Source: Trichosphaerium sp. ATCC 40318 | Taxonomy: Eukaryota; Protista; Tubulinea | Length of the DNA: 64,000 nucleotides | Reading direction: 5' to 3' | Assembly: GCA_038496445.1 (NCBI GenBank) | Contig: JALMLS010000199.1 | Coordinates: forward strand, 24,238 to 88,237 | Part shown: one piece after another, positions 38,206 to 43,350 of the stretch | Position numbering within the stretch: position 1 is the first letter of the stretch | Layout of the letters: each line of letters starts with the position of its first letter | Notes under the pieces: model-generated | What the model was told of the DNA's origin: nothing | The model's input: only the letters and a program-made list of their open reading frames with translations | The model's database searches: none | Made by a program: the position numbers and the translations under genes

Positions 38206-39528
38206 TTAAAATACAGGTTTTGCTGTGTAGCGCGGTTTCTTTTGTCTGGAGTTCTTGCCTTGTCGTCTTGGCTTTCTCTTTTGACCGCTTGATTGCCCAC
38301 GCTTCTTGTAACGATCCTATATTAAGTTAGTAAAACAATACTTGCAAAAAAAGTGTCAAAAAATTCATTATGTTGACGTACTCTGCTATCGTCTTTGTAA
38401 CCTTCCATGTAACTCGAAAATGTATTGGTTTTATTCTTGACTCCCTTACCGCCATATTTTTTATCTTTTCCTCTACGTTTCTTTGATCTAACAACCTCAT
38501 CAGCCAAAGTTTCAAAATGTCAAAAAATGAAACAAAAATGTAATACCTCGTGTCAGCATTGATGGCGTCTTCAAGGGCTTGCTTTGCGTCCCACTCTGAT
38601 AAATCCTTGTTGAGACCCTTACGTTGTTGCTTGTACTGGTACAAAGCTTCATCATGTAATTTACGCTTGGTACGCTTCTCACTCTCTACAGCACGTTGCA
38701 TCTGAAATAAAGTGTCAAAAAACAGAGTGATTACACCTCATTTACAAACAAAAAAAGGAGCTTTGACAGCTTGGTTTGTTTCGTACCTGTTTACCGTATA
38801 ATTTTTGTTGACGTTTCTTTTTACGCTCTTGTGCATCTGAAATACGACGTTGGGTGGCTAACAACACATCCTTCACCTATCGTAGATGTTATTACAACGT
38901 TCAAAAGTAGCACAGAAATAGATGTTGTGTATTTTGAGCGGTTTTACGTACCTTTGCCATGTGCCAATCTGGTTTTACCATTTGAGCAAAGTAATCGTCC
39001 GGACGTTGCTACCAAGAGGTAAGGATTGAATTAACATGCGTTACAAGTACTTGTTTGATGCCATTTTCTTCTAACATATCTCTGCCTTTTAAAAATGCAT
39101 CCATAGCCTGCATGTAGCTTGTTGTGTTAAGGAAAAATAAAATAACGAAATATAAAATTGTAAAGTGTTGTTTACGCCATGTTTGTAGCGCAACATTATC
39201 AAACCCGCGTTGCAGGAGGATACAAAGCCATTTCGCGTTTTAAGTCGTCGTTGAAATCAACTTCGCTATTATCATTCTCAGCAACAATTTCTAGCGTATC
39301 AGGCCAGCACTCGCGGTCTACCCAGCATTTTCTCAGTTCTTCAATTTTCGTGCTTATTTCCGCATCATTGTTGATTTGTTCCTCTAATTGCTCTGCAATT
39401 AACGTTTCCTTGTACTTGTCGAAGAAAGCTACTTCGTCCTCAATTTCAAGGTTTTCTTCTGCAATTATATCTCTGGTCTTTTCTAGTACTTGAAGGTACT
39501 TGTATTTTGGTTTCTGTTGATCTGCCAT
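38206..39528 (-). CDS. EBP2: rRNA-processing protein EBP2
   Basis: NDDLKREMALY; RPDDYFAQMVKPDWHMAK; KDKKYGGKGVKNKTN; basic C-terminus. Confidence 0.9.
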
Positions 39529-39639
39529 TGTGGGCTATGACACTTTGGTGAAACTGAAATATTTTAGCTTGACGCTGTAGGACTGCTCTAGTTCCAAACC
39601 CACGCCTAAGGCACAGCAAAGGTGTTAGCCATTGTATAG

Positions 39640-42600
39640 ATGAACCGACCGGCAAAGCGCGCTAAGATAGAAACATCAAAGAGGTTTCAGAGCTAGCAAA
39701 AGCTAAACATGCGCTAACTTACTTGTAGGCCGTTGTATTGGCGTGAATTGGTTCTATTTTGCCAGCTAATACCGTGCTGTCAGCATTATGTCGACTCGTT
39801 TAAAGCAGATTTCGAGAACGTTATGCAGTCGCGCGTGGGCAACTATGGCAATATGTACGTGATCATTCCTCGCCAAAACAGTTTTTAAATGCAAAATGAT
39901 GACTTTATCTCTCGGCTAGCGAATAAAATTATGTGCTAATGCCTTGACGTACACACACACTTTACTGATTGTCGTTAACGCCAAACAAGTTTTTACCTTC
40001 ACGGTCTCATCTGTCTAACGTGTTTGTAGAGGCGTATTTCGCGAGTTCTTGCTCTCTCACCCTCGTAATCAAGCAGTGGCAGCAGGCAAACAGAGGGAGT
40101 ATCTCATTCGTACGTCTAAAGAAGACAATCCGGATAGCAACGCAGCACAGCAATCCATAAGTGTTGGAACTTCGTCTTGGCATCAAAGTATAACATGGGA
40201 ATTCACCTTGTGCTTGATGCGTAATATCATCTGCCATGAGTACCAATTTGATTGGAAATGGTTACGGTACGTTGTCACTGTAGTTCTTTGTAGACTCCCA
40301 CTCATACTGGAGGTCTTACTTGCCTACAAAAGTGGCAGTGACTACTTCTCCTTGTTTTACCGTTACTCTTAGAGAACTAAACGTAAAAGCTCTTGAGTAC
40401 TTTGGAACGCAAGACGAGATTGCGTTTTGTATTGACACATACAGGCAGAGTGTCATTAAATCAAGTACATCTAGATACGCTTCAAAAGAAATAAAAAAAA
40501 TTGAAAAACAAAAATTCCTCTCTCGATTCCTTTACAGATTTTTTTTCTTTCTAAACGCGTTTGTGTTCTTTATTATGGTTGTCTTGATGATATCATATGA
40601 TTAAGTAATGGTAGAGCAGCTCGTTAATGAGTGGTGCATTCCTATTTTACCAAGTATCGCTCAAGAAGCGACTTATGAGAGGATCTATGAAGATATCATT
40701 TTGTTGTCCACTTTGATTGTTTTGAGAACTCTCAATTCACTTGTATGTGCTTCATTCGAACGTGAAATGAATGAGCGCATTGGAGATTTTGGAGACTGGG
40801 CAGCGTTTGCAATGTAAACTTGACCTTTTTTTGTTGTTTCCGTTGAGTTGGAGACGTCATTTTTTTTGTTGAACAAACGTTAATGTTCGTTTATGTATAG
40901 GTTTCTTAAAACCCATCCAGCAAATCCTGAACAAACACATGCTAATATTGACGAAATATCGTGGATAATGGCATTACGTTTATGTCGTAATGTGTTTTGC
41001 CATGAACATCATTTCGGTTGGAAAGGACTTATTGATCTTTCAGATTGTATGTTAAATTTCTTTCAAACAAGGTATACTTTGAGCGTATCTACAACACGTG
41101 CATAACAATCGAATTATAGAGAAAACATTAGTGATGTATTCGAGCTTTACAAGCATAAATGTTCCGGTGATAAGGCTGTGAAAGCTGGCAGTCCGGGTAA
41201 AACAAAATTGTACAACTTGTTGTAATGTAATTTAGGTCAGCTTCATCCTGTTGCTAGTATTCAGTTGTATCATCACTCAGATATCAAAGTAAAAGATCTT
41301 TCTATTCAATACAATTTTTACAGAGAATTAGATATTATGTACTGACGATGGAAGATCCTCACTAGTTGGATGTATTAGTACAGCTCAAAAGTTTATTCAG
41401 AATTTTTTAAGAAAAGAATCACAAATATTTGATAATCTACAGAGGCGTATGGTGAGCTCTCCAATTCAAAATCAATTCAAGTCTAATACTAAAAAGGCGC
41501 TTTTGATAGTTGGTACACCTCAGAGTGGTAAAACAACTCTTGCAAAGCACATATTTCCTTGGGCACTCAAAGGCAGCAACGATGCTCATCACGTGGTATA
41601 TGTTCATGGAAATGCGTATATGAATGTCACTGCTTTCAAGTCATCTTTAGAGCACGTCAAGATTCTTTTGTTAAAGCCTGACCATTCTAGTGAGCGTTTG
41701 AAAACAATAGCAATTGATGATTCTGTGGTTGTACTTGATGACTTTGATAATGTGATTCATGCCTTGCCTGAATCCCAACACCCTGAGCTTTGGACGTACT
41801 TGACTGGTACTCTCATACAACAATATCAATAACTTACATGTGTAGAGCTCGTTGATACTGTGAAAGTACGCTTGATTGTAGCTGGTAGCTTTATGCTTGC
41901 TGTGCAATGGGAGTTGGCTCGAAAGTTGTCCAAAGGCATCTTTTCTGGTGTAAGGTAAGGTTGGAATCAAGAAGGTTACGTACTGACTGTGTTAGCACAC
42001 GTGAAAAACGTCGTTATACCATGCCACTGAAACTAGTTTATTTTCCGCCACTTTGTAAGGTTCTTCCACTAAAAGATGCAGAACAACGTAGAAATGCGTG
42101 TCACGACATTCAATTGTGTCTTCGCCATTATACTGAATGTGACAAGTATGTATTGAAGCGCATTGTACGCTTCTTGAATGGGTACGCTGTTTATTTTTGG
42201 ACGAAAGTTAACACATTAGTTGCAGGCATACATCGTGGTGCTGGAGTTTTGAACTAGTTCAATTAAATGCTATAAAAGGGAACAGTATATCCCACCAATA
42301 TGTGTATGACTTTAAGTACGTTGATGTATTTAACATATTTACCTAGACGTTTGGCTACACCTTCTGCAGTTCTTGGCATTTCTAAGATTGCAGCGAAACA
42401 TGATACACCTGAAAAAGCTGCATCGGCATGGGTTGTATCTAATCTCATTGACACCCACAAGCGCATTTATGCCAAGTGTTTGAAATCAACCAAAGCATAT
42501 CAATTGATCGAGGTATTTGTTTTGTGTGCACCTGCTCAGTTTACTGGAGATACATTTGGGTTGTTATTGGATAAAAAAGCAAGTCATTTTGCATCCAAAA

Positions 42601-43130
42601 AACCAACCTAACTGTTGTTGTAGGGAAGTTTTCTAATGTTGAAAGACATCTATATATGGACTATAGCGCTACTGGAGTATATGTCCGAACCATCTTTTAA
42701 TTTAGCAAAGATGCACGTGTACAAAAATCAACACAGCGAAACATTTTGGTATGTACCTACATACTTTTTACTTTGTGTCTATCTTTTACAATAAGTAGGA
42801 GAGATATTTTTAGTATTCTACCACTTGCTATTTGTAGTCGATCCGATGTTACTATATTGGACAGGTACCTGCTGCATACGCTGCATCACAATATTCTAAC
42901 ACGGTTTTTTTCATAAGCTTTAATCAAGCTTGTGCTTCGATTGGAGTAAGCGATGCACAAAGTGCATCTTTAGCGAGCATATTAGGTATACAACCAAAGG
43001 TATTTGTAGTAACTGCGACTATCTCACTTTACTTAAACGGTTTAGGACACGTGTGAATGGATTGATATTTTTAGAGCTATCGGAAAGCGATTTTGTTGCA
43101 TTGACACCTGGCGTACAGTTGAATCTATAG
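39640..43130 (+). CDS. Tandem HEPN-like (2x RNxxxH) - P-loop NTPase (STAND/AAA+-like) - SAM-like protein
   Basis: Start MNRPAKRAK; duplicated domain with RNIICH (40220-40237) and RNVFCH (40986-41003); Walker A LLIVGTPQSGKTT (~41500-41538); Walker B VVVLDDFD; sensor VRLIVAGS; IVRFLNG|H; C-terminal VNGLIFLELSESDF. The last exon may extend to ~43234. Confidence 0.75.
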
Positions 43131-43350
43131 AGTCATTGTTACTCACATGTTATGAATATTTTGGGAGCAAATCAATATTCTTTAATCTTGTTGGTGAGTT
43201 AATAGAACATACAAAGGTTATTAAAGAGCAATAATACCAAGGTGTAGTTGTTGTAGGTTGGTTTTTTGTCAAAATAAATAAATTTGCAATTTATGGTTTA
43301 CAACCTATTATTATACAATGGTGTACACCTATAGGTATACCCTAAATCTT

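Follow-up and report, generated by a model that had tools for sequence, protein, structure and literature searches.

The 2013 HEPN survey (PMC3710099) describes KEN domains that follow a kinase or pseudokinase in Ire1 and RNase L, other fusions and stand-alone copies being rarer. It also describes HEPN domains fused to STAND or NACHT modules (bacterial proteins with an N-terminal HEPN followed by STAND, and the animal DZIP3/hRUL138-HEPN and CXorf38-HEPN with NACHT), as well as HEPN dyads in Swt1 and Cas13 (PMC3710099). Here we analyse a gene of Trichosphaerium sp. ATCC 40318, encoded on the plus strand of a 64,000-nucleotide stretch of contig JALMLS010000199.1 (positions 24,238 to 88,237; assembly GCA_038496445.1), hereafter the window, whose own numbering is used throughout. 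Its 836-residue product belongs to a small family known to date from tubulinean amoebae alone. From the N-terminus, it includes a tip resembling a nuclear localisation signal (NLS), two KEN-like domains and a STAND-type P-loop nucleoside triphosphatase (NTPase); a helical region comes next, and the protein ends in what is probably the KEN-like domain once more, without the R and H of the motif. An earlier note on this DNA had proposed a ribonuclease (RNase) with two HEPN domains, a STAND-like NTPase and a SAM-like C-terminus. The coding region and the two repeats are as follows (E, expectation value; HMM, hidden Markov model; cDNA, complementary DNA).

39640-43234, plus strand: coding region, 18 exons, 836 amino acids (model based on cDNA joints, canonical splice sites, frame continuity and homology)
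39730-40463, plus strand: repeat 1, predicted KEN-like HEPN domain, residues 16-166, two introns inside (HMM E 3e-51; model of P0001:17-160)
40220-40240, plus strand: repeat 1 motif RNIICHE (R121, N122, H126, E127; sequence and family alignment)
40668-41168, plus strand: repeat 2, predicted KEN-like HEPN domain, residues 188-309, two introns inside (HMM E 1e-36; model of P0001:200-325)
40986-41006, plus strand: repeat 2 motif RNVFCHE (R265, N266, H270, E271; sequence and family alignment)

The internal duplication proposed by the earlier note was borne out: the motif-bearing exons of repeats 1 and 2 are 47% identical, and the iterated family HMM detected exactly two domains in the window protein, at residues 19-164 (E 3e-51) and 194-306 (E 1e-36), and two in each of the full-length relatives. 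Both copies keep RNxxxH, as had been claimed, and this conservation extends to the homologues: the R, N, H and E of R-N-x-x-x-H-E were invariant in 30 of 30 distinct repeat copies, with relatives in Arcellinida and Echinamoeba. The Rx4-6H pattern with a polar residue after the R, a trait of the HEPN superfamily, is present in both repeats; the other highly conserved repeat positions include H-P-x-N, F-E, two W, F and Y. The search with the repeat family showed neither a further copy nor a second gene elsewhere in the 64-kb window. The sequence-profile search of the PDB with the same family returned nothing but one spurious match of 39 amino acids, and Pfam Ribonuc_2-5A matched none of 31 repeat sequences at E up to 5.

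The fold of the repeats was modelled on the orthologous Pyxidicula segments of P0001, using a family alignment that included the window exons. The repeat 1 model (P0001:17-160) reached a predicted local distance difference test (pLDDT) of 86.3 and a predicted template modelling score (pTM) of 0.82, and the repeat 2 model (P0001:200-325) a pLDDT of 90.7 and a pTM of 0.84. Both are all-helical, with the R-N of the motif at the C-terminal end of a helix and the H opening the next loop (repeat 1: R95/N96 in helix 87-99, H100 just past it; repeat 2: R80/N81 in helix 72-84, H85 just past it). In the HEPN survey, Rx4-6H marks the point where a core helix of an all-alpha domain ends and the next loop starts (PMC3710099), and the motif stands at the helix end in both models. 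When 48,161 PDB chains were searched by structure, Ire1 KEN was the top match for both models, followed by RNase L; very few of these chains are KEN entries. No E below 0.6 was obtained for the repeat models by Foldseek against the PDB; for repeat 2, IRE1 chains had template modelling (TM) scores of 0.40-0.45 and no other chain exceeded 0.27. Foldseek against the viral BFVD gave no match, and the shape search of the ESM Atlas gave TM scores of 0.40 or less.

Residues 7-126 of the repeat 2 model align to 833-953 of IRE1alpha. In its range, model R80 has 73 residues before it and 46 after it; for the IRE1 arginine, which we take to be R905, the numbers are 72 and 48. By this range arithmetic, the R-N-x3-H motifs of repeat 2 and IRE1 coincide within 1-2 residues. 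The IRE1 segment (...MRNKKHHY...) was checked in the PDB chains. The language-model neighbours with a Pfam label were, for both repeats, the HEPN_Swt1 and HEPN_DZIP3 clusters (0.86 and 0.80-0.82), which are leads only. On the basis of these models, we are fairly confident that the repeats have a HEPN/KEN-like fold, and their earlier assignment to the HEPN superfamily is supported and narrowed to an apparently KEN-like type by the Ire1 and RNase L matches and the RN...H at the helix end.

The relatives were retrieved with a profile of the two motif-bearing exons, searched against 1.84 billion representatives. There were 21 hits, from which P0004 and P0005 were dropped as low-complexity false positives. 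The genuine hits were from metagenome or Logan contigs and from the EukProt transcriptomes of three Tubulinea, namely the arcellinids Pyxidicula operculata and Arcella intermedia, and Echinamoeba exundans; no member was found outside Tubulinea-like sequences among the representatives searched. There is one family gene in each of the Pyxidicula, Arcella and Echinamoeba transcriptomes, and identity among the tubulinean relatives is 24-36%. In P0024 (Pyxidicula, 693 amino acids), both repeats and the P-loop NTPase share one Trinity open reading frame (ORF); P0033 (Arcella) and P0032 (Echinamoeba) each carry the repeats and the P-loop in a single ORF; and P0028 (618 amino acids) has repeat 2 and the NTPase together with the C-terminal region. 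The 836-residue model is collinear with P0028 over residues 221-815 (E 2e-57), with P0033 over 119-588 and with P0024 over 1-310. Because these cDNA-derived relatives hold both parts in one ORF and the model is collinear with them, the repeat-NTPase fusion, judged by sequence comparison, is a conserved feature of the family. The claim that repeats and a STAND-like NTPase share one polypeptide is thereby upheld by cDNA-derived orthologues of at least three species. In a metagenome locus of Echinamoeba type (L001, 6001-7811), both repeats lie in one exon of 335 amino acids with both RN...HE motifs intact; the NTPase of this locus is seemingly shortened, with about 60 residues from Walker A to LLMRH..DKY versus about 155 in the window protein, and no clear Walker B.

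The second half of the protein opens with the NTPase.

41332-42181, plus strand: predicted STAND-type P-loop NTPase and following helical segment, approximately residues 340-580 (Pfam, language model)
41512-41535, plus strand: Walker A, GTPQSGKT (sequence)
41725-41748, plus strand: Walker B, VVVLDDFD (sequence)
41869-41889, plus strand: strand RLIVAGS (sequence)
42114-42158, plus strand: conserved LRHYxxxDKYxLK (family comparison)

The Walker A, the Walker B and the sensor strand described in the earlier note are intact, and the two former show the STAND traits GxxxxGK[ST] and hhhhDD. The Pfam scan of the window protein, done on single exons, matched the NTPase exon to nSTAND3 at 24.7 bits (cutoff 27.2) and to NPHP3_N, AAA_16, NB-ARC and NACHT, all under cutoff; the orthologues P0024 (32.4 bits) and P0031 (27.4 bits) exceed the NPHP3_N cutoff of 24.8. 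The language-model neighbours of the NTPase belong to nSTAND1/2, NACHT, AAA_16 and ATPase_2 clusters (0.92-0.93). Because the orthologues exceed the NPHP3_N cutoff and the language-model neighbours agree, STAND-like is a reasonable predicted class for this NTPase. The NG|H motif that the earlier note put at a GxP position found no support. A fusion of the Las1-Grc3 type was considered and set aside, as the NTPase matches STAND families and not Clp1/Grc3. No sensor-repeat family (LRR, TPR, WD40) was found by the Pfam scan in the C-terminal exons.

The remainder of the protein differs from what had been proposed.

42226-42748, plus strand: C-terminal helical region (collinear with P0028; no Pfam match)
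42744-43231, plus strand: probable third, degenerate repeat copy, residues 724-836 (hhalign)
43082-43102, plus strand: GKRFCCI in place of RNxxxHE (third copy alignment)
43056-43094, plus strand: NGLIFLELSESDF, a wrong-frame reading of the last exon (frame set by splicing)

The SAM-like C-terminus of the earlier note, NGLIFLELSESDF, was rejected: it lies outside the frame demanded by splicing, and the C-terminus matched neither Pfam SAM in either frame nor any other Pfam family. The SAM-mediated oligomerisation built on it is likewise unsupported. The last exon (43046-43234) reads DTCEW...YEYFGSKS... and aligns to the C-terminus of P0028 within an alignment of E 1e-10, which also moves the end of the gene from the earlier 43130 to 43234. 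The C-terminal region opens with FWRDIFSILPL... and closes with ...YEYFGSKS..., an echo of the repeat, and hhalign matched the C-termini of the window protein and P0028 to the repeat family along almost its full length (73-81% probability, E 4e-6 to 1e-5). In the motif columns, R is replaced by G, and H by C in the window protein and by S in P0028. The family HMM alone gave no significant match on the C-terminus, and the third copy is backed by the profile-profile comparison only. P0034, a metagenome contig of 340 amino acids, encodes a region resembling that after Walker B (weak similarity; N-terminal part versus P0028 E 0.012 in the first pass, strong only after iteration), followed by a C-terminal copy with an intact RNIIAHE. 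This copy is a probable, not a proven, equivalent of repeat 3; if they match, all three copies may have been live in the ancestor of the protein. Given the profile-profile match, the echo of the repeat and the C-terminal RNIIAHE copy of P0034, the C-terminus is probably a third, degenerate copy.

The transcript and its surroundings are as follows (UTR, untranslated region; rRNA, ribosomal RNA; X1, X2 and X4, sequencing runs).

39590-39639, plus strand: 5' UTR, transcript start at about 39590 (end of X1 cDNA contig with SMART oligo)
39640-39683, 39729-39854, 40030-40266, 40373-40464, 40606-40813, 40901-41071, 41120-41196, 41236-41288, 41332-41651, plus strand: exons 1-9 (gene model)
41691-41806, 41846-41954, 41996-42181, 42226-42303, 42347-42578, 42624-42748, 42799-42864, 42918-42999, 43046-43234, plus strand: exons 10-18 (gene model)
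41652-41690, plus strand: GC-AG intron of 39 nt, in frame, in the NTPase exon (X1 cDNA joint 41651 to 41691)
39649-39666, plus strand: NLS-like basic patch PAKRAK, residues 4-9 (sequence)
39199-39560, minus strand: Ebp2-like rRNA-processing gene, divergent neighbour (first exon 25.1 bits to PF05890)

The contigs of the public run X1 are cDNA and were used for the 5' end of the transcript and for the splice joints. Because the SMART template-switch oligo GGTATCAACGCAGAGTACGGGG stands as the loose end of an X1 contig at 39590, the transcript 5' end was placed at about this position. The cDNA contigs confirm seven of the 17 introns (1, 2 and 9-13), with GT-AG or GC-AG joints: the joints of introns 1 and 2 (39683/39729 and 39854/40030) were seen in X1 and X2 contigs, and five further joints, from 41651 to 42347, in a single X1 contig of 742 nt. 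For the other introns we relied on canonical splice sites, an unbroken frame and collinear alignment with the homologues P0024, P0028, P0033 and P0002, and the predicted exons each match homologous segments of relatives (tblastn). The spliced gene starting at ATG 39640 on the plus strand, as the earlier note had it, is thus confirmed by the SMART-marked 5' end, the cDNA joints and one open frame of 836 amino acids. No contig spans 40230-41499, so that in Trichosphaerium itself reads do not show the repeats and the NTPase to be joined. If the intron 41652-41690 were retained, the protein would gain 13 residues in the stretch from Walker A to Walker B.

Other features of this gene were: a second GC-AG intron (42579-42623), predicted only, with donor GCAAGT; intron lengths in two classes, 12 of 39-53 nt from 41072 on, and the five at the 5' side of 45, 175, 106, 141 and 87 nt; and acceptors that are mostly TAG. 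The region is eukaryotic in character, with many short introns. An X2 contig (40208-40478) is unspliced over intron 3 (40267-40372) and beyond the exon 4 donor, corresponding either to intron retention or to genomic DNA in run X2, and another X2 contig is spliced at intron 1. The X1 cDNA differs from the window at 40075 (A>T), 40138 (C>G) and 40143 (C>T), in the variable insert of repeat 1, probably as a consequence of strain or allele differences.

The 5' end of the Ebp2-like cDNA lies at 39560 (SMART oligo, run X4). The two genes are head-to-head with starts 30 bp apart (39560/39590), which is a very compact bidirectional promoter; the Ebp2 neighbour is not kept in L001 (synteny check). The NLS-like PAKRAK noted earlier at the N-terminus is present, and the one orthologue checked, that of Pyxidicula, has NKRRKL at residues 5-10, in the matching place. 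The NLS-like N-terminus is possibly conserved, and PAKRAK may direct the protein to the nucleus.

HEPN RNases are generally dimeric with a composite cleft, and in Ire1 and RNase L two KEN domains must come together to form it. The amoeba protein would supply two intact KEN-like domains in one chain, which could pair in cis into a composite site (compare Cas13 and the Swt1 dyad), and the binding or hydrolysis of nucleoside triphosphate (NTP) by the STAND module would control the arrangement or the higher-order assembly of this pair. With moderate confidence, we propose that the protein cleaves RNA internally and without metal, in the manner of Ire1 and RNase L, and that its NTPase controls this cleavage. 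According to the survey, the catalytic residues of KEN, PrrC and RloC include the R and the H of Rx4-6H as well as the polar residue next to the R; these enzymes are metal-independent and leave 2',3'-cyclic phosphate ends (PMC3710099). Several observations weigh against this proposal or the role discussed below: the models of repeats 1 and 2 were built from one shared alignment; no Pfam HEPN or KEN model matches the repeats (window exons and 31 repeat sequences), the sole HEPN-family match being Abi_2 (E 0.028) in one of the 31; the family HMM, tried as a link to KEN on the IRE1 motif segment, aligned in register at 0.3 bits, within the scores of shuffled sequences, and was rejected; and the family is lineage-restricted and divergent, unlike a core function. 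A bolder version of the proposal, which we offer only tentatively, is a new KEN/HEPN branch where the KEN-KEN pair is hard-wired in one chain, the STAND ATPase replaces the kinase as assembly switch and the dead third copy serves as regulator or as decoy partner of one live domain; this single-chain, NTP-gated RNase would bridge Ire1/RNase L and the prokaryotic HEPN-STAND defence logic.

As for the role of such an RNase, we slightly favour, without deciding, the regulated processing or decay of RNA, perhaps in the nucleus. Against a classical immune receptor speak the sensor repeats that were not found, the single gene seen in each of the Pyxidicula, Arcella and Echinamoeba transcriptomes and the NLS-like N-terminus. 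Las1-Grc3 combines a HEPN nuclease with a P-loop enzyme, and Swt1 is a HEPN dyad at the nuclear pore. A housekeeping nuclease for nuclear RNA processing or surveillance following the logic of either, with the NTPase as switch for assembly or proofreading, is a possibility that we hold at clearly less than even chances: the NLS-like tip shared with the Pyxidicula orthologue, the apparently single gene per species, the head-to-head arrangement with an rRNA-processing gene and catalytic-type residues invariant over deep divergence speak for it; the confinement of the family to Tubulinea-like sequences in a search of 1.84 billion representatives, which is unusual for a core function, the match of the NTPase to STAND families rather than to Clp1/Grc3 kinases and the absence of the Ebp2 neighbourhood from L001 speak against it. 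The single gene in each of the three transcriptomes, the possibly conserved NLS-like tip and the lack of sensor repeats are as compatible with RNA processing as with immunity.

The innate-immune or abortive effector suggested by the earlier note, in which the STAND module senses an invader (for example a giant virus), oligomerises and frees the HEPN RNase pair against host and viral RNA, is in our view unlikely. HEPN-STAND/NACHT is a recurrent architecture of conflict systems in bacteria and animals (PMC3710099), the family is lineage-restricted and evolves fast (24-36% identity), and the structural neighbour RNase L is antiviral; against this, Pfam detected no LRR, TPR or WD40 repeats and the C-terminus is probably a degenerate copy of the same domain, the Pyxidicula, Arcella and Echinamoeba transcriptomes hold one gene each and the 64-kb window no second copy, the NLS-like N-terminus is shared with the one orthologue checked, and the PADLOC defence models gave marginal P-loop matches only, with no viral structure match. 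That the repeats form a non-catalytic helical module binding RNA or protein, with a generic helical-bundle match to KEN and a structural or ligand-binding RNxxxHE, is quite improbable in view of KEN being top for both models among 48,161 chains with the same R-N-x3-H spacing and place (by range arithmetic), of exactly R, N, H and E being invariant in 30/30 copies, and of the joint loss of the motif in the third copy, the pattern expected of a catalytic set.

If the repeats are true relatives of KEN, evolution has joined the KEN fold to a STAND NTPase as well, duplicated it within one chain and then inactivated part of it, which would be a natural experiment on the assembly and control of composite HEPN sites. 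The protein would add a candidate regulated RNase to the amoebae, a group in which little is known of innate immunity or RNA surveillance, and single-chain activity, if true, would make it a compact NTP-switchable eukaryotic RNase. Were the fold match generic, there would still be a lineage-specific family with a strikingly invariant RNxxxHE motif.

Compared with the described systems, the repeats are closest to the KEN of Ire1 and RNase L, their best structural match: both are all-helical, of about 120-145 residues, with R-N-x-x-x-H at a helix end and an aromatic-F pair about 25 residues further on. KEN needs two copies side by side and is coupled to a nucleotide-binding domain controlling assembly, as would be the case in the amoeba protein. 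In contrast, sequence similarity between KEN and the amoeba repeats is not detectable, the partner is a STAND P-loop NTPase instead of a kinase or pseudokinase, the nuclease-like domains are N-terminal, in tandem and in one chain, and the protein has neither a transmembrane/lumenal domain nor an ankyrin sensor. With the HEPN-STAND/NACHT fusions it shares the order of domains, a HEPN effector at the N-terminus and a STAND NTPase behind it on the same chain, and the language-model neighbours of its repeats are the HEPN_Swt1 and HEPN_DZIP3 clusters; however, each of those fusions has a single HEPN, from another family, and most also have C-terminal sensor repeats or death-fold adaptors, whereas the amoeba protein has two intact copies and a degenerate third, with no sensor repeats found, and its repeats have no Pfam match to HEPN_DZIP3 or HEPN_Swt1. 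Like Cas13 and Swt1, it has a pair of HEPN-type domains in one chain, from which a single composite site could be formed, but Cas13 is RNA-guided, bacterial and without an NTPase, and the Swt1 dyad is reported inactive, fused to PIN and without an NTPase. In the anticodon nucleases PrrC and RloC a P-loop NTPase likewise regulates a HEPN RNase in the same polypeptide, but the ATPase is of ABC type and N-terminal to a single C-terminal HEPN, and these proteins are bacterial and linked to restriction-modification. The full-text literature search showed no paper tying HEPN or KEN to these amoebae or describing the repeat-NTPase architecture. The earlier suggestion of an undescribed architecture therefore stands in part: HEPN with STAND/NACHT and HEPN dyads are known from the survey (PMC3710099); the tandem KEN-like pair N-terminal to a STAND NTPase in Amoebozoa, together with the degenerate third copy, is new as far as our searches extend.

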